Made by a program: the position numbers and the translations under genes. The notes under the pieces are model-generated. The model saw only the letters and a list, made by a program, of their open reading frames with translations, made no database searches and was not told the DNA's origin. Below, one piece after another: positions 3,591 through 59,419 of a stretch of 64,000 bases of DNA (the first letter of the stretch is position 1; every line of letters starts with the position of its first letter). The stretch comes from Anthoceros angustus (Eukaryota > Plantae > Anthocerotophyta). The stretch spans positions 394,030 to 458,029 of the forward strand of contig VJWM01000182.1 of NCBI GenBank assembly GCA_010909165.1, given 5' to 3'.

Positions 3591-3911
3591 GCCGTCAGCG
3601 AAAGTAGTACCACAGTGATCGATCCAACACTCACCACCCATGGCCACATCTATGCGCGGAGAAACTAAAGAAGTGGCAAGCTTAACCTGGTGACAGAGCT
3701 AAGAATCGAGACAAGCGCTTGAAATTGCAGCAACAAAGGTGCCTCATTTCTTCTATGTACATTCATAGCCGTTGCTAGGTTGAGCTATGGCTTCACTGAT
3801 GCTAATTGGTATGTTCAAACTGAGGAGAAAACGGTCGTAATGGGCAGGCGTCCATTCCCAACTTGGCTGACATGACGACTGAGGAGTTCATTGATAAAGC
3901 GCACAAGAAAC

Positions 3912-4807: not shown

Positions 4808-7800
4808 GAAAGAATTGGTTGCAGTGGAATGGAGAAACGAAAACCTGTGGCCAATTCCAAGCCGAGAAGAAATTGGCTATCGCAAGATGGAAAGTTGAAG
4901 CGAGGAGGAGAGTTAGATGTTGTTATGGCCAACAGAGCTCCAACAAAATTGCAGGGAGCGAATATCTCTCCTAGAAAACCTGCAACCTTATGCCAAGCCA
5001 TTAACCATATCAAAAGAGGAACAACGCCTTGCAAGACAAGCAAATCTGCAGCACATGAGGCTCTTGAAAGCGGCCAAGAAACTAACAAGCCTTGTAGCAC
5101 TTGATTGAGCTCAAGGTGACGGTGGTCAAGACCTACATGATGTGAGAGGAACATAGGATTTCATTAATCACAGTGGAAAGACTGTTGCGCACCGGAGTGT
5201 GGAGCATTCGTTTCCATGTGAGAGCCCAAACACGAGACTAGCGACGGTCGGTGGCACTCAAGGTGTGGGCAAGTGGAGACAAATATCATTTCTTTGAAAC
5301 CTCGTTTCATAATTATTTGATATATAATTTCAACGTTGAATTCTTACCACTAAACTACAAACAAACAAAGAAATTTAACAGCCATTACTCTTAATGCATA
5401 ATAGTTTTTGGACAGACATTTTATGAGTTTGATAACAAATTCATTTGCAAAGTCCCGCATATATTAATATATTTAGAAATAGCATTAACCGCTACGCCGC
5501 TAGTGTATGTCGGCAAACGGGAGTCTCGTGGCTGCATGTGTATCATGTTCGGAAAGTGACAAGTGAGCGGAAAAGGGGTGTAGACTGTAGAGTTCGGCAT
5601 TTGAAATGATGGGAGGCCAGCTGTAACGGACAGACGGAGGCAGGGTGACGGGGCAGCGCTCGGCGGGGGTGCGACAAAAGCAACAGCAGTGGGAACAGGC
5701 AGGACCCGGGAGTTGGGGGCCGGGAGCTGGAGCCCTCAGCCCTGGCATGTGCGTGCCTTGCCGACGCCAGCCGCGCACCATACATTAAATCTCCGCCTCT
5801 TCTTCCACGCGCTTTCATCAGCCACTCGGCCTCACAGCCGGGCATCGCCCCCGGGACTTCCTCGGCTGCACCGGCGCGCTCTCTGTGGATCCTGCTTGTG
5901 AGCGCTCTCGCCTCCCGCTTTGCTCGCATTCGTTTCTCGTTCTTGGTGGCCGGATCTGACTCCGCGTCTCGGTCGGCCGGATTGGCGTTCCTTTGCCATT
6001 TTATTTGCGACCGTTATACAATTCCGTGCTGCGCGGTGAACGTTTTCTTCAGTCTCTACACTTTGCGCGGTGGATTGGTTGGTGGAAGCTGACCTTCGCG
6101 TTATGCGATCTTGCAGGACAGTAGGAGGCCGTTTTGGAGGAACGAGCAGTTCAAGAATTCGGACTCAGCCAACGTTGTGCAACAATGATGAACTCGTCCT
6201 CTCCTCCTCCACGTATGGTGCCCTATCCTTCCGGCTTGTGATTTGTTGCTCCAATTCGCGTTTCTCCACATGCATTAGCACTCGTGCACCGTCGTTGCTC
6301 TTTGAGAAGCCAGATCTAGTCCACTTTGCTCAGGACATTTCTCCTTGCCATATTATCCGAGGCATGTTAGACTTTGACGGCTGGTCGGCGTTTGCAGTGA
6401 GTGTAATGGCCGCGGAGGACACGACCGCCGATCCTTCTTCATCTCCGTCCGAATTTCATCTTATGGTGGACATGTCTCAGGATGACACGTCGAGCAAGCC
6501 TACGACAAGCTTTTGGTCGTCCTCTATCTCAGCTATTACCAGAGGTGGGCATGCCTTCGGGAATTCTCTTGGGACCTCAACTTTGCAAATGCTGGTGCTG
6601 ATTGGTGTCAGGTTGACTCATCTCCAGTGGCGGAGAACGTTGAGGGGAGATTGGCCGGGTGGTTTGGCATGAATCAGTCCAAATTTCAGTGGGCGGTGGA
6701 CGCATACATGCAAGAACGAGCTGTGGTAGGTTTCTGCAGCAAATTCTCCTTCACTTTTCACTCTCAAGCGGTGTGAGAAGGAGTAAGGAGCCATGTTTCA
6801 GTTGTAACTCTTGATATTCATTGTGAACAGGCTGCTGAAAGAAAGAAGCTGCAGAGCCAAACATCTGGAAATGGTCGAATGTCTGCTGGCCGGGAGCAAG
6901 TGATGCAGGTGAGGTATCCGATCTTACTAAGTCAAGCTTCCAGTCTCTTTCTGTCACTCTACTCTGCATAGAGCTTAATCTTGTCCAAAGCCACCATCAG
7001 GCCACCCCGGCTTGAGGCCTGTACTTGCTCAGTGAGATCTTCTAACTTAGCACGTTCCTTGCTGTCTCAGAGAGGTGGTTTGCCTGTCTGATCTGAGAGG
7101 CTGGCAACGTATTCCAGACCAGGCCGGTTCTGTGATCATTAGGTTCATTATTTGAATAAGGGCTGCAAGAACCAGGCTTCGCCTCTCTCCAAGCGAATTG
7201 GAAGTTTTCGTGGTACTCATTTTGAGTCTTTGGAGCTCCGGCTGTGGATTCAGACATAGTTGAACAAAATGGGAGAGCTTGTACATAGATTAAGCGGAAC
7301 TCATCAGCTGCGAAACTTTGTATACTTCATAGTCAAGGACGGGAAAGTAGACTTTAAGGTCTCATATTATTTTTCAATATTATTTTTGATATTGGTATGA
7401 GATCACACTTCCGAATATCCTTAAACCGTATAGGTGATTAACTATTGCTATTGATAGGGGTTTAGTAAAACTGCAAGACGGGGTTTAGGGTAATTGTAAG
7501 ATCATGCTTACAAACACATCTCGGACTTGTGTGCGATAATGTTGAAAAAGGATGCGACATATTGAAAAAGGATGAGTTGAAAAAAAACGACTATGTTAAA
7601 AAAGGATAGAGTTGACAGAAAAACTAATTTTGATACATTAGCATAATACAAACTCGTGTGGTGGATGGATATCAACTTCCTGGTATGTATGTATGTGGTG
7701 AACAATGTCAACCTCATGAGTGCGAAAAGAATGGGGCCTAGCGATCCCCCCACATCATGAGGTTTCCTAATCAACCACACAATTTTCGTAAGGAACATCT

Positions 7801-8384
7801 ATTCGTTCCATCAATATATTATTTAATATAAAAACCTGATCACAGATAATTATCAACGACACAAATACAGAGTGACATATACTAGTTGTAGCTAAGACAT
7901 GGACTATAAGCCAATCAACATATAACAAGGCTTTCATACGCTACATCCTTTCAAGATAACTACAACTAAAGTCTCTATGAAGTCAAAGATAGCTCCATCA
8001 ATGCACACACAATGAGTTTTGCACGAAGAAGAGGTCTACAAGTTACGAAGTTTAGCTACATGAAATTATTCCACCAGTACCAATGAGCAAACAACCTCTT
8101 TGATTAGCTGCATATCAAAGGTAGACCAACTTCAAATGCCTCCTTGCTCAATAACTAACTTCGATAACAACAAGACTCAATGCCACAAAAAATTTACCAT
8201 CCTAAACCCTATATTTAAATAAAAGCCCCCTGGATCGGATACGAGCGTGTTAGGTTTGTGTGAACCCCAGTACACGTATACTAAATGTAATGTAAGTTTC
8301 CTACGTTTTCTAAACTATAGACATATAAAAAAGGTTCAAACTCATCTACGTGAAGTTAAATTAAGCTCTTCAAAAATGCTAATT

Positions 8385-8830
8385 ATCCTCCCTTCATGAC
8401 TGACACGGTTGCTGGGAGTTCATTTGAACTTCATTGTTAAGCAACCCTCTGGACGGATCGCTACTGGGATAGGGTACCTCCCACCCTTGATTACTCTTAC
8501 AGTGGCCCTCGATAGCCTGCCTCTATTTTAAAGCCCTGTGTAGCTGCCTGATGTATGATCTTTACTGCATCGCCCGCTAAAAAAGGGCTGATGTTGCTGT
8601 TGTTGTAAGGTTCTGAAGCCTTGTGAGGCTGCTGAACAATGTAAGATTTATGATCTTTATTGTCTTGCCAGCAAAAAAAAGGGCTGTTGTTGTGAGGTTC
8701 AAAATTCGGCGGCGCCACCTAAAATATGATCTTTGATGTCTCGCCCGCAAAAAAGGGGTGTTGTTGTAAAATTCTGATCCTTTGGAGTCGTTTAAATTAT
8801 ATGGCATGCAAATACTCAATTACGTTCACC
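8385..8830 (+). repeat. Dispersed non-coding repeat with internal tandem subunits, copy 1
   Basis: Reverse complement of 8390-8485 aligns with 27379-27570. Motif AAAAAGGG(C/G)TGTTGTTGTAAGGTTC recurs three times and again near 27270 (minus) and 42880 (plus). Confidence 0.7.
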
Positions 8831-9430
8831 CAAAGAAAAAATGCTAGCTGAAAAATTTCAAAGAAAGAACTAAGAATCTAAACTTACCCAACAAATCTCT
8901 AATTCGAATATTAGTGACATGCCTGACCAACCCATAACCCTACATCCTAAGCCTCAAGGTGGGTAGCTGTTTGTGAGATGAAGGAGCTGAGAAACAAGCT
9001 TCATATCTATTGCATATTTTAAGAAAATATGTCATATAATCAATTTTGATATAAAATATATTGAAATTTATATTTTAACTTAATATGATTTATTATTGTT
9101 ATTATAATTTAATTAATTATTTTTTATCTATTATTTTCTCATAGTGTGAATTGAATAAAAGCTGTTTAAAAGAAAGTAGAGTATTGCAACATAAAGCCTC
9201 TTCTTCAACTATACAAGCCTATTCACTTAGTTAACAATAATTATTATTACTGATATCACTTATATTTATTTTTTACTCTACTTTTCAATTCAGTCTCACC
9301 GGATCTTATGAAAAATGGTTAATGTGGTGTTTGAAAAGAAAGGAGAAGCAAATGAAATTTGGTATTGAAAAGCTTATAAAAATTCTCACTATTACGGCAT
9401 GTTTGAAGCTAAGTGCTTCGGGTCACAACT

Positions 9431-12629: not shown

Positions 12630-15600
12630 CTACTGTTGTAGCAACAGTCGAGCTTTTTCTTCAACATTCTCCACAGTGAAGCCGTACTTTTTGAAGACAT
12701 CCAGATAAGCACCGCTTGCCCCAAATGTCCTCACCCCCAGCACATGTCCCTGAGGTCCTACGTACTCGCGCCAGCCGATGGGTGAGCCCGCCTCAACTGC
12801 CAGCCTTCTGTGCACCTTGGGAGGTAGGATTGATTCCTTGTACTCCTGCCCTTGCTCGTCAAATAGCTCCCACGAAACCAGTGACACTACTCTTACTTTA
12901 GTACCTTCCTTGCGCAGGTTCTCTGCTGCCCCTTCGCAGAGGCACAGTTCGGAGCCAGTACCTATGAGAATAATGTCAGGCGCCTGGCTGTTAGAGTTGT
13001 CGCTGACGATGTACCCACCTTTCTCCACTCCTTCCACTGAAGAGCCTGCCACATTCGCTAGCACCTTCTGCCTGGAGAGGGATATTACTGTGGGGCCATG
13101 GTGGCGTGCTATGGCCACCTTGTACGCCCCTGCTGTCTCGTTACCATCTGCAGGCCGTAGGACAACCATGTTTGGGATAGCTCTCAGTCCCACCAATTGC
13201 TCCACTGGTTGATGAGTTGGTCCATCTTCTCCCAACCCGATGGAGTCATGGGTGAGGATGTACAGCACCTGAGCTTCGCTCAGCGAAGATAACCTGATGG
13301 CATTCTTCATGTAGTCAGAGAAGACGAGGAAAGTGGCTGCAACGGGGATGAGGCCAGAGCTGTGGAGAGCAAGGCCGTTGGAAATCCCTGCCATGGCATG
13401 CTCCCTAACTCCGTAGTGAATGTTCCTGCCCCAAGGGCTTGTCGGTGAGAAGTCATCCATATCTTCGAAGTACACTTTGTTGGAGCTTGCAAGGTCTGCA
13501 CTTCCCCCGATCAATCCCGGAATGACTTTTGCCAAGGCGTTCAAGCATTTGTCCGAATAGCTGCGGGTGGCATCCACTGGTTCATCCCCCGACCAGTGCT
13601 GCAGACAAGAAAGAGAAGTCAGGACTTTTGTGAAGTGTCCAGATCAGCCATGATCCATGAATGCGAGAAGCGAAGATATCTTAAACTCGAGAGCTGAGAG
13701 TTCTTACCGGCAGAACACGTGCCCAATCCGAGGGCAGCTTGCGATCAAGTAGGAGTCGAAATTCTCCTCCTTCCGCCGGATAATGAGTTTCGTATCTTTC
13801 GACTGTTTCCTTCCATATCTCCTCAAGATGTGCACCACGCCGCCCATTTTCCCTGAACCTCCTGTTAAAATTGACACAGAAGGAACCTTAGATGCGCTGT
13901 ACGTTGAGTCCTGAAAATATCTAATCGATCCTGAGTGCACAACAGCTTTGGAAAGAGATCAGAGGCGGGGCTTACTCATAAACCATGGGCAAGACAAAAA
14001 ACGGCTCTCGCTCTGCAGGCCACCGAAGTTTCTGCTTCATCCTCGTCACGTCTTCTTCATCAAATGTACCATGGTGAGCTTTTGCAGTGCCTTCCTTCTT
14101 AGACAATCTGCCAATGCTGGATTTTACCTGCAAGTTGAATAAGCAACGGCACTAAGACCAAGAACACCAACACTGGGGTAGAACAGGTAGCGCTTATTCC
14201 TGAGAGCTGGAGCTTAAGGTCATTCAAAGCCAAGCAGATTCCCCCAACCTGGATAAAAGTGGGCTTGTCTGTCTCCGCTACAGCTTCATCTAAAACTGCT
14301 CGTCGAAAACTTGAAAGATCCTCATAAATATTGTCGATGGTAATGGTGTGCCAACCAAGAGCACGGAATCGACCAGCAACATCTTCGTCGAAGGCAAGAT
14401 TTGTGTCGCCATCAATAGTGTTATGGTTGTCATCGTAGATGACCGTTAACTTGTGCAGCTTCAAATGTCCTGCCAAAGAAGCTGCCTCGTTTGCGATACC
14501 TTCCATGGCACAACCATCTCCCATTATACAATACCTAGATAAGCGCCAGACATCCCAGAACGCTCAGTTTTGACATCTCTAGCAGCAATGATCAGTCGGC
14601 TGAGCAAATGGGACATCTCAAGAAATAAGGACATTCCGTACGTTCGATGGTCTACCAAAGTGGCGTCAGGCTTGTTGAATCGAGCAGCAAGATGCCGCTC
14701 TGCAATGGCCAATCCAACTGCATTTGCCACACCCTGTCCCAAAGGACCTGCTTGGTGCCAAACGTATCACACAGTCTGTGAGTTGGAAGGTCCTTAAAAT
14801 GCGTCACAACAAGGAACACAATGTGCACTATTTGCAACCTCCAGAGACTTAGCCAGTATCCTGCACAGTTACAATACCGACCTGTTGTAACTTCAATTCC
14901 AGGAGTGGTCACGTTTTCCGGGTGTCCAGGGGTTCTTCCATCCAACTTGCATAGCCGCTTAAGGTCCTCCACCTGCATATTTTGGTACATCACATCCGCA
15001 AGACAGAATCTGATCAGTGACAACTGCCTTCACGAATAGATTTACGCTCTGGACAATGAACGTTGAGTGCAAATCTGTATGGAAATGTTGACGAGTGAAA
15101 GCGCGCGCACCTGCAGATCGTAGCCGGCAAGATGAAGGCAAATGTACTGCAGCAGGCAGCCGTGACCCGCGCTGAGCACAAACCTATCTCGATTAAACCA
15201 ACGCGGATTATCGGGATTGTACTTCATCACATCTTTCCACAAGACGTATCCAACCTCTGCGAGGCCCATGGGAAGACCCGGGTGGCCAGACTTTGCATTG
15301 TTCACGGAATCAACGACAAGCATCCGGATGTTGTCAGCACAACGCTTATCAATTTGTGCCTGAAGGACGTCCTCGCTTTCACGTTCCACTTTCTTGGTGT
15401 CCAGACTGGAAGCTAAAGCAATCTCATTCTTCCAGGCCTCCAACGTCTCCCCCTCCTCCAAGTCTCTTCCATTGACAACGTTCTGCGGCCCGGATCCGGA
15501 AGCGCTTCCCTCAACCTTCTTGTTGTAATCAACTTCCGGCAAAGTCACGTTCCCATTCGCCCCGCTGTCAGGCTTCTTCACGGCATCGGACGTGACTGCC

Positions 15601-15863
15601 TCTGATTCTCGATAATCAGCTCGCGCAGCTCCTGCCGGAGATCCCATTCCCTCGCCCCTCGCCCTAGGCCTGCCTCCGCGTAGCAGCCGGATCGCGCCGG
15701 TCGGCCTGAAGCTGGTTGAGAGCTTGCTGAAAGGAGGACGCTGCAGATGCGTTGCAGCTTGGCTTGGATCACAGAGTCTCACAGTCTGAGCACAGTTGTG
15801 GTGCAAAACGCTGGTCGGGGAAATCAGAGGACGTGTAAGACCTGCTCTGGACTCTAGCAGCAT
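12630..15863 (-). CDS. Transketolase, probably plastid-targeted, 7 exons
   Basis: [27 protein letters not shown], ThDP motif GDGCAMEG...DDN, GVREHAM and [18 protein letters not shown]. Exons join in frame at GT-AG sites. Confidence 0.96.
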
Positions 15864-18899: not shown

Positions 18900-19744
18900 T
18901 CTCAAGGCCAGTTGTTGTTCTGAGGAGAACCTGCACTAATGACAACTTGAGGATAGCACCAACTCACAGACGGCAGGTGATGCCACCTGGGTTTTGAGCC
19001 TGAGAGCTGCCAGGTGAGAGCTGCCACACCATGCTGAGTGTGAAGGGGTTGGGCTCACATCAACGCACATGCTCCCGTACCTATGGCGACTGTTCTGTCC
19101 GGACCCTCACGGACTCTGGTAGGAAAAGCAACAAATCTGGGTAGAAGAAGAAGAAGAAGAAGAAGTGGATTGTATTATAGTCCACTTGGACGAAATTTTC
19201 CTGTCATGGGACTTGATACTTAACAACTTGTACCATGGTGTGCGGAAGCTACTTGCACCAAGGGCATCCACTGCAAGGGTACTGGCCGGTTAATGACAGG
19301 TGAAATTTCCAGATCTGTGGTTCGGTATATTCCTAGTGAACGCTGTGCGGAAGATAGTTTTCTCTTCATGCTATCTTCTTCTTTTTTCACACTGAACTCG
19401 TGGATTTATTTAGAGTAGGCCCGTAGGGCTTTTACAAGAGGCAGCCTGCTGTCCCAGCAGTGATCCCACCTATGATGCTTGACCCGGGAATTGCAATGGA
19501 TCCAATCAGATTGACAACATTAAATGACTTTTACAATCTTTGATAAAGGCCTTGGCGAAAAAACCAATTCGCACACATGCCACTTGGGGATGCCCACCAA
19601 TTCACATACGCACTGCTTGGACAGCCAGCCCCTTTAAACCAGTTCCGATTCCGTCATCAGTTTTCACAGTAATATCGTTTCCTCAACTCTGAACACCCAG
19701 GAAACCCAAAGAAGATTTGTGTCCGCTGCTCCTTCAACTTCTAC

Positions 19745-19998
19745 GTCTCAACGAGTCCTGGGCAGACTCAACAAATCCTGGGCCGACTCAAGTCTCAACA
19801 AGTCCTGGGCAGATTCAATTTCTCAAGTCTCAACAAATCCTGGGCCGACTCCGGTCTCAACAAGTCCTGGGCAGACTCAATTTCTCAAGTCTCAACAAGT
19901 CCTGGGCGGACTCCGGTCTCAACAAGTCCTGGGCAGACTCAATGTCTCAAGTCCCAACAAGTCCCGGGCGGACTCAGGTCCCGAAGAGTCTTGGGCAG
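19745..19998. repeat. Minisatellite with alternating 35 and 27 bp units (62 bp higher-order repeat)
   Basis: Core GTCTCAACAAGTCCTGGGC(A/C/G)GACTC repeated about 9 times, alternately followed by AATTTCTCAA or CG. Confidence 0.9.
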
Positions 19999-20052
19999 TG
20001 TTCTATTTCAGTGAAATAAAACTTGGACGATAGCCATATCATCGTTACATTA

Positions 20053-20126
20053 TGCACTGGCCGGGAATCGAACCCTTGCCCACTTCCTCACATAAATGTT
20101 CCACCACGAGACTGCACCATCAGTGC
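20053..20126 (-). ncRNA. tRNA-like element or degenerate tRNA (Gly-like acceptor and T arm)
   Basis: 74 nt GCACTGA...GGGTTCGATTCCCGGCCAGTGCA. Acceptor stem 6/7 bp, intact T loop/B box, but only 3 bp of T stem, aberrant D arm and anticodon loop, and no oligo-T terminator. Confidence 0.6.
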
Positions 20127-20231
20127 TATCCTGCGCAGATTGAAGTCGCCAACTATGGTATGACCTCCAACTAGGCATTCGATAACTCGAATCGTGGCAC
20201 TGCGAGCTTGCCGCGTCTCTTAGTAACCAGT

Positions 20232-20367
20232 GGCTGTGCCATTGCACATGCATGCCAACTCAACACAAAGAAGGCATTGGTAAGACAACGGCCAACGTGA
20301 ATCGTCACTCTCTGCTCCCACTGGGATCCCCTTGCAACAAGCCATGCAAGGAGGTTTTTGTGGAGAG
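20232..20367 (-). ncRNA. Candidate H/ACA snoRNA, target not identified
   Basis: Two hairpins with internal loops. The 3' hairpin (GCCGTTG/CAATGGC; ATGCC/GGCAT) is followed by ACA+3 nt with a 14 nt pocket-to-box distance. The hinge is only AGAGAG (non-canonical H box). Confidence 0.4.
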
Positions 20368-20744
20368 AAGTTCAAAACGAAAGGTGATGATTACTAGAAG
20401 CGGAATTTGTGTGCTTCCGCCATCCGTCGTGGTAGTGAAGAGTCACTACCCAAGCAGACACAAGCTAGATACTTTTCGGAGTATCATGATAAGGACAGGA
20501 TTGAGCATCTAGATGGCACTCTCCGGTACTTAACTCTTACTCCAGAGCGGTCGCAAAGCAGCATAACAAAGAAACTGAAACTACCAAGGACACAGAAGCT
20601 GGCAACTTCTGAGAGTACCATGAGGAAAACAATTACTGGGCATCCAGATTTGTGCTCTTCAGTACTTCGACTAGCATTCCATAGGAAGGGCAACGTGCAA
20701 GACCAAAGACCACTAGCATTGCAAGAAGATAAGCGTTACTTTCC

Positions 20745-20874
20745 GACTGTTCTGCACTGTCTGAAGTCAACCCCACTTGGAACGGGTTGACTAATTCTGA
20801 TGCAGTTCTTTCTGTAGGCATACTTAGACCTCAGCTACAACAAGAAGCAAAGTAGCTGTCTGTCACAGGGTGCC
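20745..20874 (-). ncRNA. H/ACA snoRNA, copy A; predicted 18S rRNA pseudouridylation guide
   Basis: Hairpin - ACAGAA (ANANNA) - hairpin - ACA+3 nt, 130 nt. 3' pocket CAGAAUU / UCAGACA pairs around 18S UGUCUGG-UU-AAUUCCG; pocket is 14 nt from ACA. Confidence 0.75.
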
Positions 20875-21000
20875 GTACAAATACAAGACTCAAGTACTTA
20901 CTACAGACTCCGAACCCGTTGGAAAAGCACACGATGCACCATGGGAAAACACTATCAGACCAATACATCTAGACATCCACGTTGGCAAATATTACCTTTG

Positions 21001-21127
21001 CACTGTTTTGCAGTGTCTGAAGTCAACTCCACTAGAAATAGGATAACTAATTCTGCTGCAAGCTGTCTGTCGGCATTCTGTTAAAACAGGGACAATCAAA
21101 AAGTGTGCCTGCAGCTAACAGGGTGCC
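21001..21127 (-). ncRNA. H/ACA snoRNA, copy B (paralogue of copy A)
   Basis: Same pocket and ACA box. Lower stem shows compensatory change (CTGCA/TGCAG vs TTGCAG/CTGCAA). Hinge ACAGAC deviates from ANANNA at the last base. Confidence 0.68.
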
Positions 21128-21418
21128 CTAGGGTGAACCACCCGAGTAGAGGAGGACCGACATTACATGACATCATCCTTCAGTCCACAAGGCCAAACGC
21201 AACACTCTAAAGAAGATCCTTCCCCCTACAATGCGCACTGCAGGCTTGTTTAAAGAGGGTCTCAAACTGTACACAGAGAGTTCATTCCATTACACATGTA
21301 TCGTACAGGCAGCAACTCTAACAATAAACTCCTACCAGCTAAAGAATTTATATAACAAAGCCAGTATAGACAATCACCAGATATCAACTGAGGTTGCTGT
21401 CTAAATCAAATCCTTGTG

Positions 21419-22815
21419 CTATGTACGTAATGAGGTCCTTGGAACTTGAGGAAACCCAAATTCATCCGCAGCCTGTCACACAATCAAGCCCGCTGTTAGG
21501 AACAGTGTTCCATGTCAGTAAGTCCAAATGTACCACACGTTTCAAATACCGAGGTTCTTAGTCTGCAGCATTCCCAAGACCCACGTGGTCCTACAACCCA
21601 CCTGAGGGTTAGCCTGTGGAACAGGATTGTGGCCAGACGGAGCTGCTGGCAGGTTTAAATCGGAATCCGGCTCAGTTTCAGTCTCAGGTTGCAAATAGGA
21701 AGGAACGCTCTCGGGTGTCTCAATACCCATGTCCGCTTCTAACGCATCGAGCTCTGCACAAAAAGATAAGCTATTAGAAAACATGAATCCAAACGACAGA
21801 AATCCATTTCTAACGCCTCTATCCAACAAATGCGAGGCAATCTGGCCAAAAAGCTCACCGCCCATCAGCTCTTCCTCATCTAAATCGTCAGGCACACTGT
21901 AACTGCGACCTAGGGACTCTTGAATCTCTGAGCTGTAATCAACCAAATCCATCATCTCATCTTGCATTTTCTGTCACAAAAAACCACAGGTGAGATCAGG
22001 AAGCACAAAATTCAGCAGACAACCCGTGACAGGTTCCGAGAGAAAGCCAGGGCTCACATCGATATCATCAATTTTCAGCGTCTTCATTGTTCCCTTCAGC
22101 TCCTTGTTAGCAACCTTCATGGCCGCCATCTAGACACAACACACACACACACACGTCATCAGTCCCACCATTTCCATCAGCAATCAAACTGCCACTTTCA
22201 ACATTACCGACCACTCACAGTTTGCTGTGCATCTTTGATGCTTTCAGTAGCAAAGGACACTTGTTCCAGGTTAAAGGTCTGATTGTACAGCTGGTCCCTC
22301 TGCCCCTCGTACCTACAGTTCCACAAACACCCCCTTCAGTACCGCATCATCTCCAGTCGGCTCGGGCACCACTATCCAAAAAACAACCTAGTCAAACTCC
22401 TAAGAACTCCATGCCATATTCAAAACCGCACACGAATCAGAGGCAGAGAGCTACATCTTCTTCTGCTTCAAAAGCCTCATGGCACGTGCTTTGATGGCCT
22501 CTTGAGCAGGCCCAGGCCGCGTTTTCTTCAGTTGCTCCTTGTACCGCACCAGCTCTCCGTCAAGCTTCCTGATCTTCTCATCCACGGTGTCTCCTCTTTT
22601 GTTGATCTGTAGAGCCAGGGCAGCCAGCTGCATCAAGGACTCCGAAACCCTATCCACCAGTGCTCTTCACAAATCCAACCGCGGCAAGCCGTGACACTAT
22701 CTACTGCGTTCCAGGCACTCTGCAGAGCTGACGGCAGGACTATTACCCTCTCGGTCGCCTCCTCCACCGTGGGAGGCGGCACCTTGTCCTTTTTGGCACC
22801 GAACACGCGCCTCAT
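21419..22815 (-). CDS. VPS60: ESCRT-III associated Snf7-family protein VPS60/CHMP5, multi-exon
   Basis: MRRVFGAKKDK..., INKRGDTVDEKIRKLDGEL...AIKARAMRLLKQKKM, MQDEMMDLVDYSSEIQESLGRSYSVPDDLDEEELMGELDALE, C-terminus DEFGFPQVPRTSLRT*. Confidence 0.94.
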
Positions 22816-31264: not shown

Positions 31265-35082
<3,818 letters not shown>

Positions 35083-36107
35083 AAGCAGGTCACGTGTTCA
35101 GCTGAACGCATGGGCGGGGCTCTTTTCCCTCCCTCCCCCCATGGCCGTGAGCAGCTGGAGCAGTTCATGCCTCCGCAGACGGAACTCGATCTCTCCAGTG
35201 TGCTGGCAAGTACGGCTCTTTCTCTTCACATCCTTTGTCCGGCAGCGGTGGATTAATACTCTACTGAGGTGCTATTTAGGGGGATGACAACCAACGTTTT
35301 CTACCTTTGTCACTGCTGGCTGTGGCAGTCTGCTGTATTTTTTGTTCCTGACGAGGTATCAGATTGGAGTGGGAGAATGTCTCTGATCTGATTTTGTCTA
35401 TTGACAAGACTGACTGAACCTTACACATGGGGGTTGATATGAAAGTTTTGTCTTCCCCCTTGTTTCCTAGGTTTCAAGGGACCCCCCTTCTTATTCATGA
35501 ACTTGTATAAGTCGTGCATAGGCACGCCCAGTTATGGATCAGCTATTTCAACGGATCATCTCTGTCTCGTGCATGGCACCTAATTAATTACTTACGACCT
35601 GTGTGGAGCTTAGTTTTGTTGACGAGTCTTCCAACCGCGCTTCCCTTCCACAGAAAGCTGTTCCAGTCTGGAATAGCGAAGGGTGAGACGGGGCACTACC
35701 AGTCTGCTTCTAACCGCGGGACCGGTTGCGCTTCCGACTGTAGTTGTGGTGTGGCCAGGAACAGGGGCTGGGATGATGCCATGGCTCGATCCGCACGACG
35801 GCTCGGAGACACGGGAAACGCTGAAATTGAGAAAATGCAGTGCCTAACGGCCCGCTGTTTGTACCAGTCTGCTCGCTGACGAGCCTGCGCAGTGTGCACT
35901 TTCTCTGCGTGTATCTGACCCTCGCTTTCCACGCATCAAAATATCTCATCTGCACTGCACTTGCTTTTCGTGAGGTGTTTCGGTCGCAGTCTAATCCTTC
36001 AACCCCATAATGACCGACCCTCTTAATTTGAGGTATGTTTTTGGGCTCTCACTAAAAATACATGGCCCTAGTAAATCAAATATGGCGGGAGCCTTCTTCC
36101 GCTTACT

Positions 36108-43329: not shown

Positions 43330-46300
43330 GCAGGTGAAACCAAGCTCGATAAGTAAGGCATGAAAAGTTTCATTCCAGGCCCTGCTGGATTGTTTCAGGC
43401 CATATAAAGTCTTGAGTAACAAACATACCTTGTCCATATCAACTTGGAAACCCTTAGGTTGCATCATGTATATCTCTTCTTCTAGAGACCCATTAAGGAA
43501 GGCTGTTTTTACATCAAGCTAATGGACGTGAGGCCATAGTGGGCTGCTAGGGATAACAGTATCCTAATAGAGGTCGACTTTACAACTGGGGCAAATGTTT
43601 CATTGTAATCCGGACCAGCTACTTGGCTATATCCTTTAGTAACTAATCTCGCCTTGTAGCGTCCTACACTCCCGTCAGTGTTTAACTTCTTCTTAAATAC
43701 CCATTTGCATGATACTGGCTTACGACCTTCAGGCAAGTCCACTAACTTCCAAGTGCCATTAGCTATGAGGGAATTATACTCAGAGTCTATTGCTTCCTTC
43801 CAGTATTGGGCTTCAGGACCTGTGATAACTTCAAGGTATGTAGCAGGCTCTGAGGTGTTAAAATTGGGTGTAGAAGATGAGGTAGCAGACAGTCCAGCAA
43901 CATAGGGAGGGGCTCAGACCATTCATGACGAGGAGGCCTATGACGTGTAGACCTACGCAATACTGGTGAGTCAGGAGGGTCTGGAGCAGGGACTGAAGGC
44001 TCTACAGGTGGTGGTGCAGGAACTAAAAGCTTACCAGAGACAGGAACAGGAACTATGTCTGGAGTAGGCTCAACAAGGTCAGGTAAACTCAAATCAGCTT
44101 CTTCAGGTTCAGTAAGAGGAGGAGAGAGCAACTCATCTGGCAAGGGTGGTGATGGTATTTGCTGCGATGGCTGTGTACTCCCCCGTGAAGCTGAAGAAGG
44201 TGGATCTTCAAAATCGAAAATGGAGACGTCAGCATCCTGGTCAGAGGAAAAGTCAGCTGAATCATCAACACCATGTATGGAGATGGGAGCCGGCAAAGAA
44301 GCAGGGATCAACAGATTATCATGTCGGCGAAGCAAAGCATTCTCATGAAATATAACACTGCGAGAATATGATAACTGTCGAGTAACAGGGTCAAAAAGCT
44401 TGTATCCTTTAACATCCTCAGCATAGCCTACGAAGATTCGTCGGACAGCCTTGGCATCCAACTTGCAGCGTAATTGAGAAGGGACTAAAGCATATGCTAG
44501 GCTACCAAAAATCTGCAAGTGAGTAATACGGGGCTTCTTGCCTGTCCACCTTTCATAAGGTCTGATGAGTCCAAGCTCCTTGGTGGGCAGTCTGTTTTGT
44601 ACATAATTGGCCGCAACAAGGGCCTCTGCCCAGTATCCCCTTGTGAGTCCAGCAAAAGACAGAGTTGAAAGTGTAGCTTCCTGTAGGGTCCTGTTCTTCC
44701 TCTCCGCAAAAGCATTTTGTGCAGGGGTATAGGGAACGGTAAACTGATGGATAACTCCCTCTGCTGCACAAAACTTAGAAAAGGCATGGTTAGTATATTC
44801 TCCCCCTTTGTCAGTGTTAAGGATCTTTAGTTTGCATCCAGTCTGACGTTGAGCCATGGTGGTAAAGTCTTGGAAACAAGAAAGTGTTTGACTTTTGCTA
44901 TGAAGAACGTAGATGGTGCAATATCTACTCCACTCATCGAGGAAGATGAGGAAATAAAGGGCCCCTCCAAACGATTCAGTAGACATAGGACCACAGAGGT
45001 CACTGTGAGCTGTATGCAAGAGGCTAGGGGCTCTAGAAAGATTCTGATCTCGAAATGGTTGGGAGATGGCTTTGTTGACCTGACAAGAGTCAAAAAAAGC
45101 TTGGTGGTCAAAAGAAAAAGACAGTTGATCTCGAAAAACAGTGTTGTTAACCAAGGAAGTTAGGCGCTGAAAATTCACATGTCCTAGCCGACAGTGCCAT
45201 AGCTGAGTTGGTGAGAAAGAGGGTGAGACACTTACATGGGCAGTGCTACACTGTGGTAAGGTTCTGACATTCAGCAAATACAAATCGTTAAAAGGTGGAC
45301 CAGAGAAAATATCATCCCAACCGGGTATGCGAGAAATTGAACAGCCAGTATGGTCAAAGCAGATTCGACAAGAATGTTCCTCAGCTAGTTTCATAACTGA
45401 CATCAAGTTTTTAGTCATGGCAGGGACGAAAAGCACACCTGTGAGAACCAAGACATCTAAGTTGGGCAGTTCTGTGCTTACCGAACCAGAACCTTTGATA
45501 GCAAGACCACTGTCATCACCTAACAACACAAACTGGCAACTGTCAGAAGCTGGTGTGAAATCGTGAAAGGCTTGTCTGTCATAGCAGATATGACTGGTTG
45601 CACCGGAATCCAAAAACCACATGTCAGCTTGTATGTGAACAGAGGATAAACAAACTGCAAGTATTGATGGGGTTTTGGATGTAGGAGGTTTAGCAGTAGC
45701 AAGATTTGATTCTGGGGCAGACACTTCCCTTTTAGGCTCCCCAGCACGCTTCTTACGATAGTCCTTTTCATAATGCCCGGGAATCTTGCACCAATTACAT
45801 GTGAAAGTCTTCCTCTGAAGATTCGGCTGCCTTGTAATGGAGTGACTTCCTCGGCCCTGTCCTCCTCTACCACGGCCACCTCTGCCACCTCTGCCTCGTC
45901 CAGAAAATAGAACCCTAGTGTTTTGATGAGTTCCTTGCTTGCCCTTGTGGAAACCCTTGGTCCGTTCTTCAGCTAAGAGGGCACCAAGTAGTTCCTCCAG
46001 GGTTAGGACTCGGGGTCCTCCAGCAGCCGCTGCAGAAGACCTTGCAAATTGAGAGCTAATAAAATGGCTGTAGCTCTCAGGCAGAGAGGCTAATAGGGTA
46101 GTCCCAGCTTGAGTCTCGGTGAGAACTGTCCCACAATAAGCTAAGGTGGCACGCGCAGTGCGAAACCGGTTGATATAAGACTCCACAGTCTCGGTCTCCT
46201 TCATCCTCATGCCATAAAACTCTCTATGTGCATACAATTGGGAAGCACTGCTCTTATCTCAGATAAAGTGATCGGGTTGTGCCATGCACCGAGGTGTCGA

Positions 46301-56564: not shown

Positions 56565-59419
56565 TTGGCCATCATTTCCTTCATCTTGTTCCCTTGTTGC
56601 TCCACTTTTTGGCTGCCATTTCCACGTCCCTTCTCACCGCTTTGGCGTCCTTTTGCGTACACGCTCCTTCCTCTACTGATCTTGCTCCAACTCGTTTTCG
56701 ATTCCTTCTTTTTCCTTCCCATCATCACCTGACGAATCTTCCATTGCCATCGGTCTCTTCTCGTGAACCGTCCGAGGAATCTGTTGAGGAGCTATCTTCC
56801 TCCGTGGAATTGTCATCGAGGACGAGTACTTCTTCTTTTCTTCTTGGATTTCTTCTTGTCTCGCCATGCCCTCTCGTCCTTCTTTGATTTCTTTTTCTCC
56901 TCTGCGTTGGACTCCTTGTAGTTCAGGCGGCATTGATCGCCCGATCCAAGTCTTTCGGCCTTGAGCTTCCCCATCTCGGTGCCAGACCTCGCAAACCAAC
57001 GATTGCCATTAACTATGAGTGAGGATTGACGATCACGGTGTGAAACCTTTCCACATAAGCCTGCGGTGTCTCCATACGCGGATGGGTCGATGAATCGCCC
57101 AAAGGAGCAAAACCTTTTCACTTGGTGTAAACGATCTGGTATTTGGAAAATCCCTGTTGGATTGTGTCTTTGGGTGATTTTTTTGGTTTTTTGCTAAGTT
57201 TGGTGTCAAGAAGAACTAGGTTGTCGAGGAAGGAATATTTATAGTAGAAAGTGTCCTTGGCCTATGAGTTTTGGGGTTGTTTACGGAAATAATAATCGAT
57301 CCTTGGACTATGAACCGATACTCCTTGGCCTTTGGTCTTGGAATATTTAATAAAAGGCCTATATAAGGAAAGTGGGTCTTCATATTTGGCAGGCAATCAA
57401 GTCCATAGGCTAGTTGTCGAACCATAGGGCGTAGTTGAATTGGTGTGGTCATTGACTGGGGTGTGTAGCTATGTTCAAGGCGGTAGGAACCGGAAGGGCG
57501 CTGGAGGAAGAAGTGGTAGCCGGGTTGGCGGTGAGAGTTCGGGAAATATAACCCTAAGGTCCAACTCGGAAGGCACCGGGCGCGGCATGGGGTAGCTCAG
57601 GACAATTCTGACAGGCACGAGCTCTGACGAGGTCATGAAGGGCAGCCCCACAGTGGCGGTGGGAAGCTCATGAGTGGGAGGTAGGAACCTTGGAGTCACC
57701 AAGTTGGGAGTAGGCCACTACTCGTAGTTCGTGGCGGGAAGTGGGGTTCAGGGCGCCGGCAGCTGAAATTTCGATGCCCAACGGCCCAATATAGACCATT
57801 GGAGGGTCCGAGTGGAGAATTGGTAAGGAGCCGACTTGGGTTCATGGAAAGCGGTGGAATTATGAACCCAAGTCTGTAGGAGTGTGCTCCACCAAGGCTA
57901 AGTCACAAGGGAAGGAATCGGGGAAAGGCCTGGTTGGGATGTGGAGATTTTATGGGAGGATTTACGGACCGACGAGGAAGGAGGGCCCATGGATTGGCAG
58001 GAGAGGACGGGCGAGGATCGGAGGAGGGCGGAGATAACGAGGCAAGGAGTAGTGGCATCCTAGGAATAGAACTTTGGATAGGATGCCATCCGACCTTGTG
58101 TTCTAGGTTAGCTACTCCTAGAACACTAAGATGCTAAAAATGACCTTTATTGGTCATTATCTAGGACTTGAAGAGCATGCGATTAGAGCAAATCAAAGAG
58201 CATTAGCAAGGTTAGGCAATCTATCTCGCAGTCCGCCAAGAGGCTGCTGTTGAATCCTACTTGCTATTTCGGTTTCTACTTTCCCACCTATTGAACGTGT
58301 AGGTTGAGCAGGAAGGACACGAATTTGGTGCATCAAATCTATAGTGCTTATTTGTCTTCTTAGCATGCTTGCATGCTACTCCCCTAACAAAAGGGTTAGC
58401 AAGCAGGGCTGGCTTCAACAAAGTTAGCAGTTTGAAATCAAGGTGTCATATCTGCTCCTGCACATCACGTAAGTCTACACTAGGCCGCGATGGCGTCGCT
58501 AAAACGCGTCGATCTACATATCACGATGTGACTCAATTACGTTATTAATTGAGTAACACTTATGGGAGGGAAAACATGGGTTGTTAGAAAACCTCTTTGA
58601 TTTTGGTTTCTTTGTGGAAGGGCAATCACCAAGTGGCGCCTCGATCCGGGAAGAGAGATTCAATGGTATTGAAAGACTCCTTACTTCAAGAATGCGAACA
58701 GGCTGGTTTTGGATTCGAGTAGTCCATTCTCCCAAGTGTCGATGAAGCCGCCTCGCAAGGTGTGTGCCATGGTGTGCTCGGCCCTCTGCACTCTCGATTT
58801 TGTGGAATGGCTCACAGGCGAGGCGCCATTAGTGCCCTTCCAGGTTGGCCATTCATTAGGCCAGATTTTTGTGCTTTTAGAACTCGTTGTTGACATTCTA
58901 ATCTCTATAGTGCTTCCGACAAACTACTGCAGATCGGTGGTTGTCCTAAGATTTCCACCGATTTTGCTAGAAAAGCAAAGTGTGAGATGCGCTTAGGATC
59001 ACTTCGCTAATCCACAAGGAAATGTTCTAGCATCTATATAGGAAAACAGCACAAAACATTTTCTTTATTCTTCCTGTTTCTAGATCAAGAAAACATATTT
59101 CTAAATCAAAAACAACAAGAAAAATATTTCAGATGCATTCTTCATAATGCATTTTTCAATGTGCATTCGTAGGAATGCAACCTGCATCTACATGCTCTGA
59201 TACCATTACGAAATTCAGGCAAATGCAGATCAATTAATCATATTGATAATTACATTGTGTATCAAGAACATACATAAACATGTATACTACTTAGAATATG
59301 AAAAGACAACTTAACTTGACTTATGAATCATCGTGACCTAATCAAACGACGCAACCCTAATGAAAAGGTATGTAGCTATACCCTAACTAAACCCCTGAAC
59401 CCTAATCATCTATCCAACA
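56565..59419 (-). mobile_element. Decayed LTR retrotransposon pieces; probable 5' LTR at 59207-59419 and tRNA-Met PBS at 59194-59205
   Basis: Minus strand TGTTGGA...CGTA followed by A-TGGTATCAGAGC. Downstream are only broken gag-like charged ORFs; may be more than one element. Confidence 0.5.

Follow-up and report, generated by a model that had tools for sequence, protein, structure and literature searches.

A likely pair of H/ACA snoRNA genes next to a degenerate tRNA-like element downstream of VPS60 in a hornwort

Can a tRNA mimic set the 3' end of a small nucleolar RNA (snoRNA) precursor in a plant nucleus? The question is raised by an intergenic region of the hornwort Anthoceros angustus, found in a stretch of 64,000 nucleotides (nt) of contig VJWM01000182.1 (positions 394,030 to 458,029). 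This whole 64-kb stretch is called the window here, and positions are counted from its first letter. On its minus strand, downstream of the gene VPS60 (also CHMP5), a first-pass annotation had listed five items: two paralogous H/ACA folds (here units A and B), a hairpin-dense block, a third H/ACA candidate, and a 74-nt tRNA-like sequence. They were proposed to form one snoRNA polycistron, or a read-through product of VPS60, with its 3' end cut at the tRNA mimic. Two of the five items, units A and B, are well borne out by the sequence analysis described here; the remaining items are weaker. A snoRNA cluster is likely, and a 3' end made by the tRNA mimic is highly improbable. The locus is probably an ordinary dicistronic H/ACA pair that adjoins an unlinked tRNA relic.

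The minimum free energy (MFE) fold of unit B (20874-20745, minus strand, 130 nt) is the canonical H/ACA layout (z = -3.4). It consists of a 58-nt hairpin with an internal loop (20874-20817), the hinge box ACAGAA (20815-20810), and a 54-nt hairpin (20805-20752) with a 7+7 internal loop, after which comes A-ACA-GTC (ACA at 20750-20748). Unit A (21127-21001, minus strand, 127 nt) has the same succession of parts: a 5' hairpin (21127-21072), the H-like box ACAGAC (21070-21065), a 3' hairpin (21061-21008), and ACA (21006-21004). In both units a single nucleotide separates the 3' hairpin from ACA. In H/ACA RNAs the base of the upper stem lies 14 to 16 nt from the H or ACA box. This distance is 16 nt in the 5' hairpins and 14 nt in the 3' hairpins of both units. 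By definition, box H is ANANNA, the 3' box is ACANNN, and the pockets lie on either side of the target U (PMC2875012). The hinge of unit B conforms to box H. A crude home-made scanner of H/ACA architecture, run on both strands of the window with shuffled controls, recovers unit B as a full H/ACA RNA.

The two units also fold in the same way when they are compared with each other. With the canonical structure of 26 pairs imposed on their alignment, 94% of the cells are paired, against 25-42% when the partners are slid, and three pairs are altered on both sides. RNAalifold, run without constraint on A and B, also arrives at this architecture of two hairpins and shows five compensatory pairs, and the claim of two paralogous H/ACA folds is thus confirmed. 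Two of these five pairs fall within the 5' "pocket" (alignment columns 7-13 with 46-52, in the hairpins 21127-21072 and 20874-20817), pointing to a 5' hairpin that serves as a structural rod and not as a guide. A covariance model built from the two units (R1) finds only units A and B in the window (143.7 and 157.3 bits, respectively); the next best match has 12 bits.

Sequence conservation between the units is selective. Identity is 72% over the snoRNA bodies and 80% over the 3' hairpins with ACA. A direct repeat of 69 nt (80% identical, copies 256 nt apart) extends into both units. The 126-nt spacer between A and B (21000-20875, minus strand), when compared with the stretch after B, is 53% identical, and the mean for shuffled sequences is 50%. 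The bodies are kept while the spacers are at shuffle level, implying that the duplication is old and that both snoRNA copies have been held by purifying selection. The pair would have arisen by duplication of a unit of about 253 nt in the intergenic region downstream of VPS60. All 14 nt of the 3' pocket are identical in A and B (CAGAATT at 21055-21049 and 20799-20793, TCAGACA at 21020-21014 and 20764-20758, all minus strand), while the surrounding stems vary with compensation.

This common 3' pocket is complementary to helix 34 of 18S rRNA. On the two sides of the first U of UU in the motif UGUCUGG-UU-AAUUC it forms 7 bp, one of them G.U, and 5 bp. The motif is present in at least 114 eukaryotic ribosomal DNA (rDNA) contigs. 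They were fetched by a 29-nt pattern from the 18S motif, and the contigs tested are protist or algal, not land-plant. The guide pairing is found at the motif in 12 of the 12 long rDNA contigs tested. On one 6.5-kb rDNA, 12 contiguous pairs in canonical geometry were formed in 0.07-0.3% of trials with random or composition-matched pockets. For the 5' pockets of A and B, no consistent target was found in at least 12 of these rDNA contigs, where plant-specific sites of the 5' pockets, and of the third candidate described below, would be missed. Apart from this, one metagenome contig (Ga0209406_1003833) carries the 18S motif twice, 9190 nt apart on one strand, implying that it holds a complete protist or algal rDNA repeat unit.

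In Arabidopsis 18S rRNA, the 2'-O-methylated residues Um1270, Gm1271, and Gm1272 are consecutive, and they are the counterpart of human Um1326/Gm1328 (PMC8351944, supplementary table 3). We infer that they correspond to UGG of the motif, so that the predicted target is the next residue, U1273 of Arabidopsis in the numbering of PMC8351944. Note that the 18S numbering in PMC8053127 is 3 higher. The assignment of the A/B guide to helix 34 holds at the level of sequence. Together, the two guides may direct a pseudouridine specific to this lineage, at a helix-34 position where the uridine is conserved universally and is unmodified in Arabidopsis, human, and yeast.

A known snoRNA has pocket strands of similar sequence. 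In Rfam, the 3' hairpin of unit A (20987-21061, minus strand) weakly matches the 5' hairpin of SNORA15 of vertebrates (RF00398; 18.9 bits, E = 2), whose consensus pocket strands GAAUA and CCAGACA resemble those of A and B. However, the score is well below the gathering level of 47 bits, one hairpin is aligned, and the hairpin is followed by box H in SNORA15 and by ACA here. The similarity is a resemblance and not membership of the family. It could be a coincidence or could reflect an old guide for the same 18S motif.

A simple course of events may be proposed for the pair. Units A and B would be co-transcribed by RNA polymerase II (Pol II) as a dicistronic precursor of the plant type, either from a promoter of their own or by read-through from VPS60. 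They would be released by endonuclease cuts and by exonuclease trimming up to the bound dyskerin/Cbf5 complex. Each 3' hairpin would then guide pseudouridylation of the first U after GG in the helix-34 motif. The 5' hairpin, with its structural look, would have no target. SnoRNA genes about 126 nt apart on one strand are the typical layout of a plant polycistronic cluster (PMC2875012), and that part of the first-pass proposal is plausible, while the tRNA-mimic 3' end that went with it is without sequence support.

Is VPS60 the host gene of the pair? Its stop codon (TAG, 21421-21419, minus strand) was located from the letters, the homology of the last exons to plant VPS60/CHMP5, and a Pfam match to Snf7, the family of this protein, in an upstream exon. 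Unit A begins only 291 nt after it on the same strand, as had been estimated (about 290 nt). The units could then be real but promoterless and be processed from a long 3' extension or read-through transcript of VPS60. Between the stop codon and unit A, no promoter motif of the telo-box or site-II type was recognised by eye, as expected if VPS60 is the host. An AT-rich sequence in this interval, TATATAAAT at about 21353-21345, could however be a TATA box just as well as a poly(A) signal, and the snoRNA clusters of plants mostly form units of their own or lie in introns (PMC8351944, PMC2875012). Transcription from VPS60 alone is unlikely.

Downstream of the pair, the evidence for further snoRNAs is of another quality. 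The hairpin-dense block (20640-20341, minus strand) contains short perfect hairpins. It is real, but only mildly structured: z is -2.0, -2.5, and -2.1 in three 120-nt windows, and sliding 120-nt folds of the minus strand give z near 0 outside these three. Neither snoRNA boxes nor guides were identified in the block, and it has no C/D guide match. In the search for C/D snoRNAs on the minus strand, there is no perfect C box, and no guide of at least 11 nt upstream of any CTGA matches conserved rDNA. On the opposite strand, a perfect C box (RTGATGA) exists at 20384; a nearby D box with an rRNA guide was not found.

The third H/ACA-like candidate (20370-20233, minus strand) is a stable double hairpin with internal loops of 6+6 and 7+6 and with ACA at 20237-20235. 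Its fold has z = -2.95, and none of 200 shuffles is as stable. ACA lies at 14 nt, and the scanner flags a single ACA hairpin; such hairpins occur about four times per shuffled 1.45 kb. The hinge reads AGAGAG/AGAGUG without an ANANNA box, and ACA is sequestered in the MFE fold. Neither pocket has a conserved rRNA target in at least 12 of the rDNA contigs. What was annotated as a third H/ACA snoRNA is then a stable double hairpin and ACA without the canonical H box and the rRNA target. It may be a decayed or orphan member of the cluster, and that it is a real H/ACA RNA, orphan or decaying, is doubtful.

The last item is the 74-nt element (20126-20053, minus strand; the border had been placed at 20127). 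It contains the only exact B box in the window (GGTTCGANTCC), which is perfect and lies at 20074-20064 (GGTTCGATTCC). It has an acceptor stem of 6 bp plus an A.C mismatch at canonical spacing and an anticodon stem of 5 bp; U8, A14, and G18-G19 are in place. The perfect B box and the two stems indicate that the element is tRNA-derived, as had been claimed, and by our own estimate the tRNA-like features would meet by chance only very rarely, in roughly two cases in a thousand. The T arm and the acceptor ends resemble a nuclear tRNA of the Gly, Glu, or Asp type, which we presume as a lead to the parent.

The cloverleaf itself is poor. The acceptor, D, anticodon, and T stems are not all paired as in tRNA models: there are three Watson-Crick pairs and two A.G in the T stem, almost no pairs in the D stem, and 8 nt in the anticodon loop. 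The MFE fold differs from the cloverleaf, and the fold of the element has z = +0.7 against shuffles. ARAGORN with default settings finds no tRNA in the window. It calls the element only at a threshold of 90%, at which shuffled windows give about 0.7 calls each. In Rfam, the match within 20030-20150 is limited to the 13-nt T hairpin (7 bits). The element is separated from unit B by 618 nt and from the third candidate by 106 nt, and in sequence nothing ties it to the snoRNAs. It is probably a decayed tRNA gene or a retro-copy that came by chance to lie in the same intergenic region, and it would then be no signal for snoRNA processing.

Two observations may be added on the surroundings of the element. 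A tandem minisatellite (20004-19745, minus strand), directly downstream of it, has alternating units of 27 and 35 nt (period 62) and is confined to this locus within the window; the 27-mer has nine copies with identities of 67-100%. ARAGORN at 85-90% makes other weak tRNA-like calls, three in 8271-8941 and two similar to tRNA-Ser(GGA) near 35000-35570 (34986-35574), and shuffled sequences are also called.

The element may also have its own transcription. It could be the head of an RNA polymerase III (Pol III) unit, either a copy of a short interspersed nuclear element (SINE) or a degenerate gene of the tRNA or tRNA-snoRNA type, driven by internal A and B boxes and independent of the snoRNAs. 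In addition to the perfect B box, U8, A14, G18, and G19 are residues like those of an A box, and the first T4 run after the element (20018-20021, minus strand), 32 nt downstream, is a possible Pol III stop. Moreover, a sequence similar to box C, ACGATGA, lies 7 nt after the element and CTGA follows 38 nt later, which loosely recalls the tRNA-snoRNA dicistrons of plants with their spacers of 1-16 bp (PMC8166872). However, this C/D-like stretch has only about 38 nt with a T4 run among them, and it possesses neither a terminal stem nor an rRNA guide of at least 11 nt. For these reasons, a relic of a tRNA-snoRNA dicistron downstream of the tRNA-like piece was dropped. For a SINE, neither a target-site duplication nor a tail of A or simple repeats was seen by eye, and the upstream region is not AT-rich. 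A high-copy SINE head had also been named in the first-pass annotation as evidence that would count against its model; no second copy of the element was found in the 64-kb window. A separate Pol III unit is quite unlikely, and the element is better read as a relic.

How secure are units A and B themselves? Several points weigh against their reading as working snoRNAs with the target named above. The H box of unit A, ACAGAC, ends in C and is not ANANNA, so that unit A may be impaired. The covariation score is reached by 57 of 500 shuffles; the covariation comes from only two paralogues, which makes the shuffle control weak, and the argument is one of combined lines of evidence. The scanner reports 6-8 matches of the "full H/ACA" type per strand in the window and about 2.6 in shuffles, and with this background architecture alone is weak evidence. 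At the gathering level, Rfam has no match in the whole window and no matching family for A and B; at E <= 10, the region 19700-21500 gives noise alone (trpB, DicF, SNORA15 at E = 2, mir-7094). The target uridine comes directly after three 2'-O-methylated residues, and neither the mapped nor the predicted pseudouridines of 18S rRNA in Arabidopsis, human, and yeast include it (PMC8351944, supplementary table 3), implying either a new site or an idle guide. As for the relic, the tRNA piece has preserved its acceptor stem better than the other stems, which is unexpected under purely neutral decay.

From these points one may suppose that A and B are a duplicated structured sequence or snoRNA pseudogenes, and that the 18S match is coincidental. 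The unlisted target, the hinge of unit A, the missing Rfam family, and the notable background of the scanner are in line with this. It does not agree, however, with bodies that are kept next to spacers decayed to random, nor with compensatory changes in the stems around invariant pockets. The 18S match, at the correct 14 nt from ACA, has a chance probability P of about 0.001-0.003. Non-functional copies are very unlikely.

There remains the proposal from which the question arose. A Pol II transcript (a polycistron or VPS60 read-through) would run through A, B, the block, and the third candidate, and a cut by RNase P (PRORP) and RNase Z at the tRNA-like element would set its 3' end, as in MALAT1/mascRNA. 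All the elements are indeed on the same strand of one intergenic region that has no open reading frame (ORF) recognisable by Pfam. The tRNA-like element keeps the parts that these enzymes use most (the 6-bp acceptor stem, a canonical T loop, and GG in the D loop), and tRNA-like elements that set RNA ends exist in plant mitochondria (PMC11658184). What speaks against the proposal is the state and place of the element. The cloverleaf is weak in the T and D stems and has no excess stability, the Rfam tRNA match is confined to the T hairpin, and the distances to the last secure snoRNA (618 nt) and to the weak third candidate (106 nt) are not suggestive of a joint unit. The B box and the T4 run provide the element with possible Pol III features of its own. 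A nuclear precedent in plants was not found in the literature searched, and tRNA-mRNA dicistrons were not detected in the moss and the liverwort tested (PMC8166872). The idea of a nuclear tRNA-mimic 3' end has no positive support in the sequence, and we consider it highly improbable. Its special form, in which a hornwort precursor of A, B, and the hairpin RNAs downstream is ended by RNase P and RNase Z at a decayed tRNA kept as a minimal acceptor and T-arm mimic, would be the counterpart, in a plant nucleus, of MALAT1/mascRNA and of the mitochondrial t-elements; it is extremely improbable.

The DNA of the window is nuclear and comes from a plant. Its minus strand carries a gene for S-adenosylhomocysteine hydrolase (AdoHcyase, E = 1e-100) followed by the VPS60/CHMP5 gene, for which the closest database protein is a transcriptome entry of the hornwort Nothoceros aenigmaticus. 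On the plus strand, a gene in which one exon weakly matches Peptidase_M14 has its end near 18900. VPS60 and this gene converge, and the units therefore lie within an intergenic region of about 2.1-2.5 kb. Five ORFs in this region have no Pfam match, and a coding explanation was dropped. A repeat explanation was also set aside: BLAST of 19300-21450 against the window returns only the A/B pair and the local minisatellite. The best VPS60 match on a contig, which is a distant AT-rich plant contig from a metagenome of the Joint Genome Institute (JGI; L001-L004), has no such guide downstream of VPS60, and a metagenome scan for the conserved 3'-hairpin pattern gave no match.

Other features of the window are as follows. 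The scanner also lists hairpin-H-hairpin-ACA candidates on the plus strand (2273-2398, 3762-3875, 7524-7707, 9281-9430, and 59075-59195) and on the minus strand (61771-61651, 55030-54919, 46769-46643, and 22403-22281), most of which are probably noise. Exons of transketolase (N-terminal, pyrimidine-binding, and C-terminal domains) are found at 12630-15863 on the minus strand. There is also a polyprotein ORF of a copia-type long terminal repeat (LTR) retrotransposon (gag, integrase, and SH3-like domains) and a transposase ORF of the Tnp2/CACTA type (43787-46237 and 716-1486, both minus strand).

No description of hornwort snoRNAs was found in the literature searched, and two well-supported H/ACA genes are a small but useful addition to the annotation of this lineage. 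They come with a prediction: in the decoding region, the residue that follows the conserved Um-Gm-Gm of 18S helix 34 should be a pseudouridine, although no modification of this uridine is reported in Arabidopsis, human, or yeast. If a nuclear tRNA mimic did define where a plant snoRNA precursor ends, this would be a mode of 3'-end formation new to plant RNAs.

The locus can be compared with several known systems. The vertebrate RNAs MALAT1 (with mascRNA) and MEN-beta (PMC11658184) share with it the idea only, that is, a non-aminoacylated tRNA mimic that ends a long nuclear RNA and is cut by RNase P and RNase Z. While mascRNA is a conserved and well-paired cloverleaf, the element here has three impaired arms and no excess stability. 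In plant mitochondria, t-elements set mRNA ends, and their cleavage by RNase P and RNase Z and the CCA-tailing are described as experimentally shown (Forner et al. 2007, as reported in PMC11658184). They are tRNA-derived and non-aminoacylated, define RNA ends through the same enzymes, and are found in plants. However, they are organellar and flank mRNAs or rRNAs, whereas the present element is nuclear and lies near snoRNAs.

Dicistronic tRNA-mRNA transcripts are found in vascular plants (PMC8166872), and there too a protein-coding gene is followed at a short distance, on its own strand, by a sequence of the tRNA type. The tRNA genes concerned are intact and expressed and as a rule lie less than 200 bp away, whereas the element here is degenerate and about 1.3 kb past the VPS60 stop. 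The statement that the arrangement is not recognised from plants needs to be qualified in view of the mitochondrial t-elements and these tRNA-mRNA dicistrons.

Plant tRNA-snoRNA dicistrons also combine a tRNA-type element and snoRNAs on one strand. In genes such as tRNA-Gly-snoR43 (Kruszka et al. 2003, as cited in PMC8351944 and PMC8166872), the tRNA is functional and forms the 5' part, with a spacer of 1-16 bp between it and a C/D snoRNA. The transcripts are made by Pol III and cut by RNase Z, and according to PMC8166872 there is no poly-T between the tRNA and the snoRNA. In the hornwort the order is reversed, with the H/ACA genes upstream. The tRNA-like piece is degenerate, lies 3' at a distance of 618 nt, and is not followed by a credible C/D snoRNA.

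The closest counterparts are the polycistronic H/ACA clusters of Arabidopsis and rice (Leader et al. 1997 and Brown et al. 2003, as cited in PMC2875012 and PMC8351944). Units A and B differ from the members of these clusters, as described there, in that they belong to no Rfam family, have an unlisted target uridine and a recognisable target for the 3' hairpin only, and, in unit A, have an H box that ends in C. They agree with them in the two hairpins, the hinge box, ACA with a 3' end predicted three nucleotides after it, the bipartite pocket 14-16 nt from the box, and the arrangement of tandem paralogues about 100-150 nt apart on one strand of an intergenic region.

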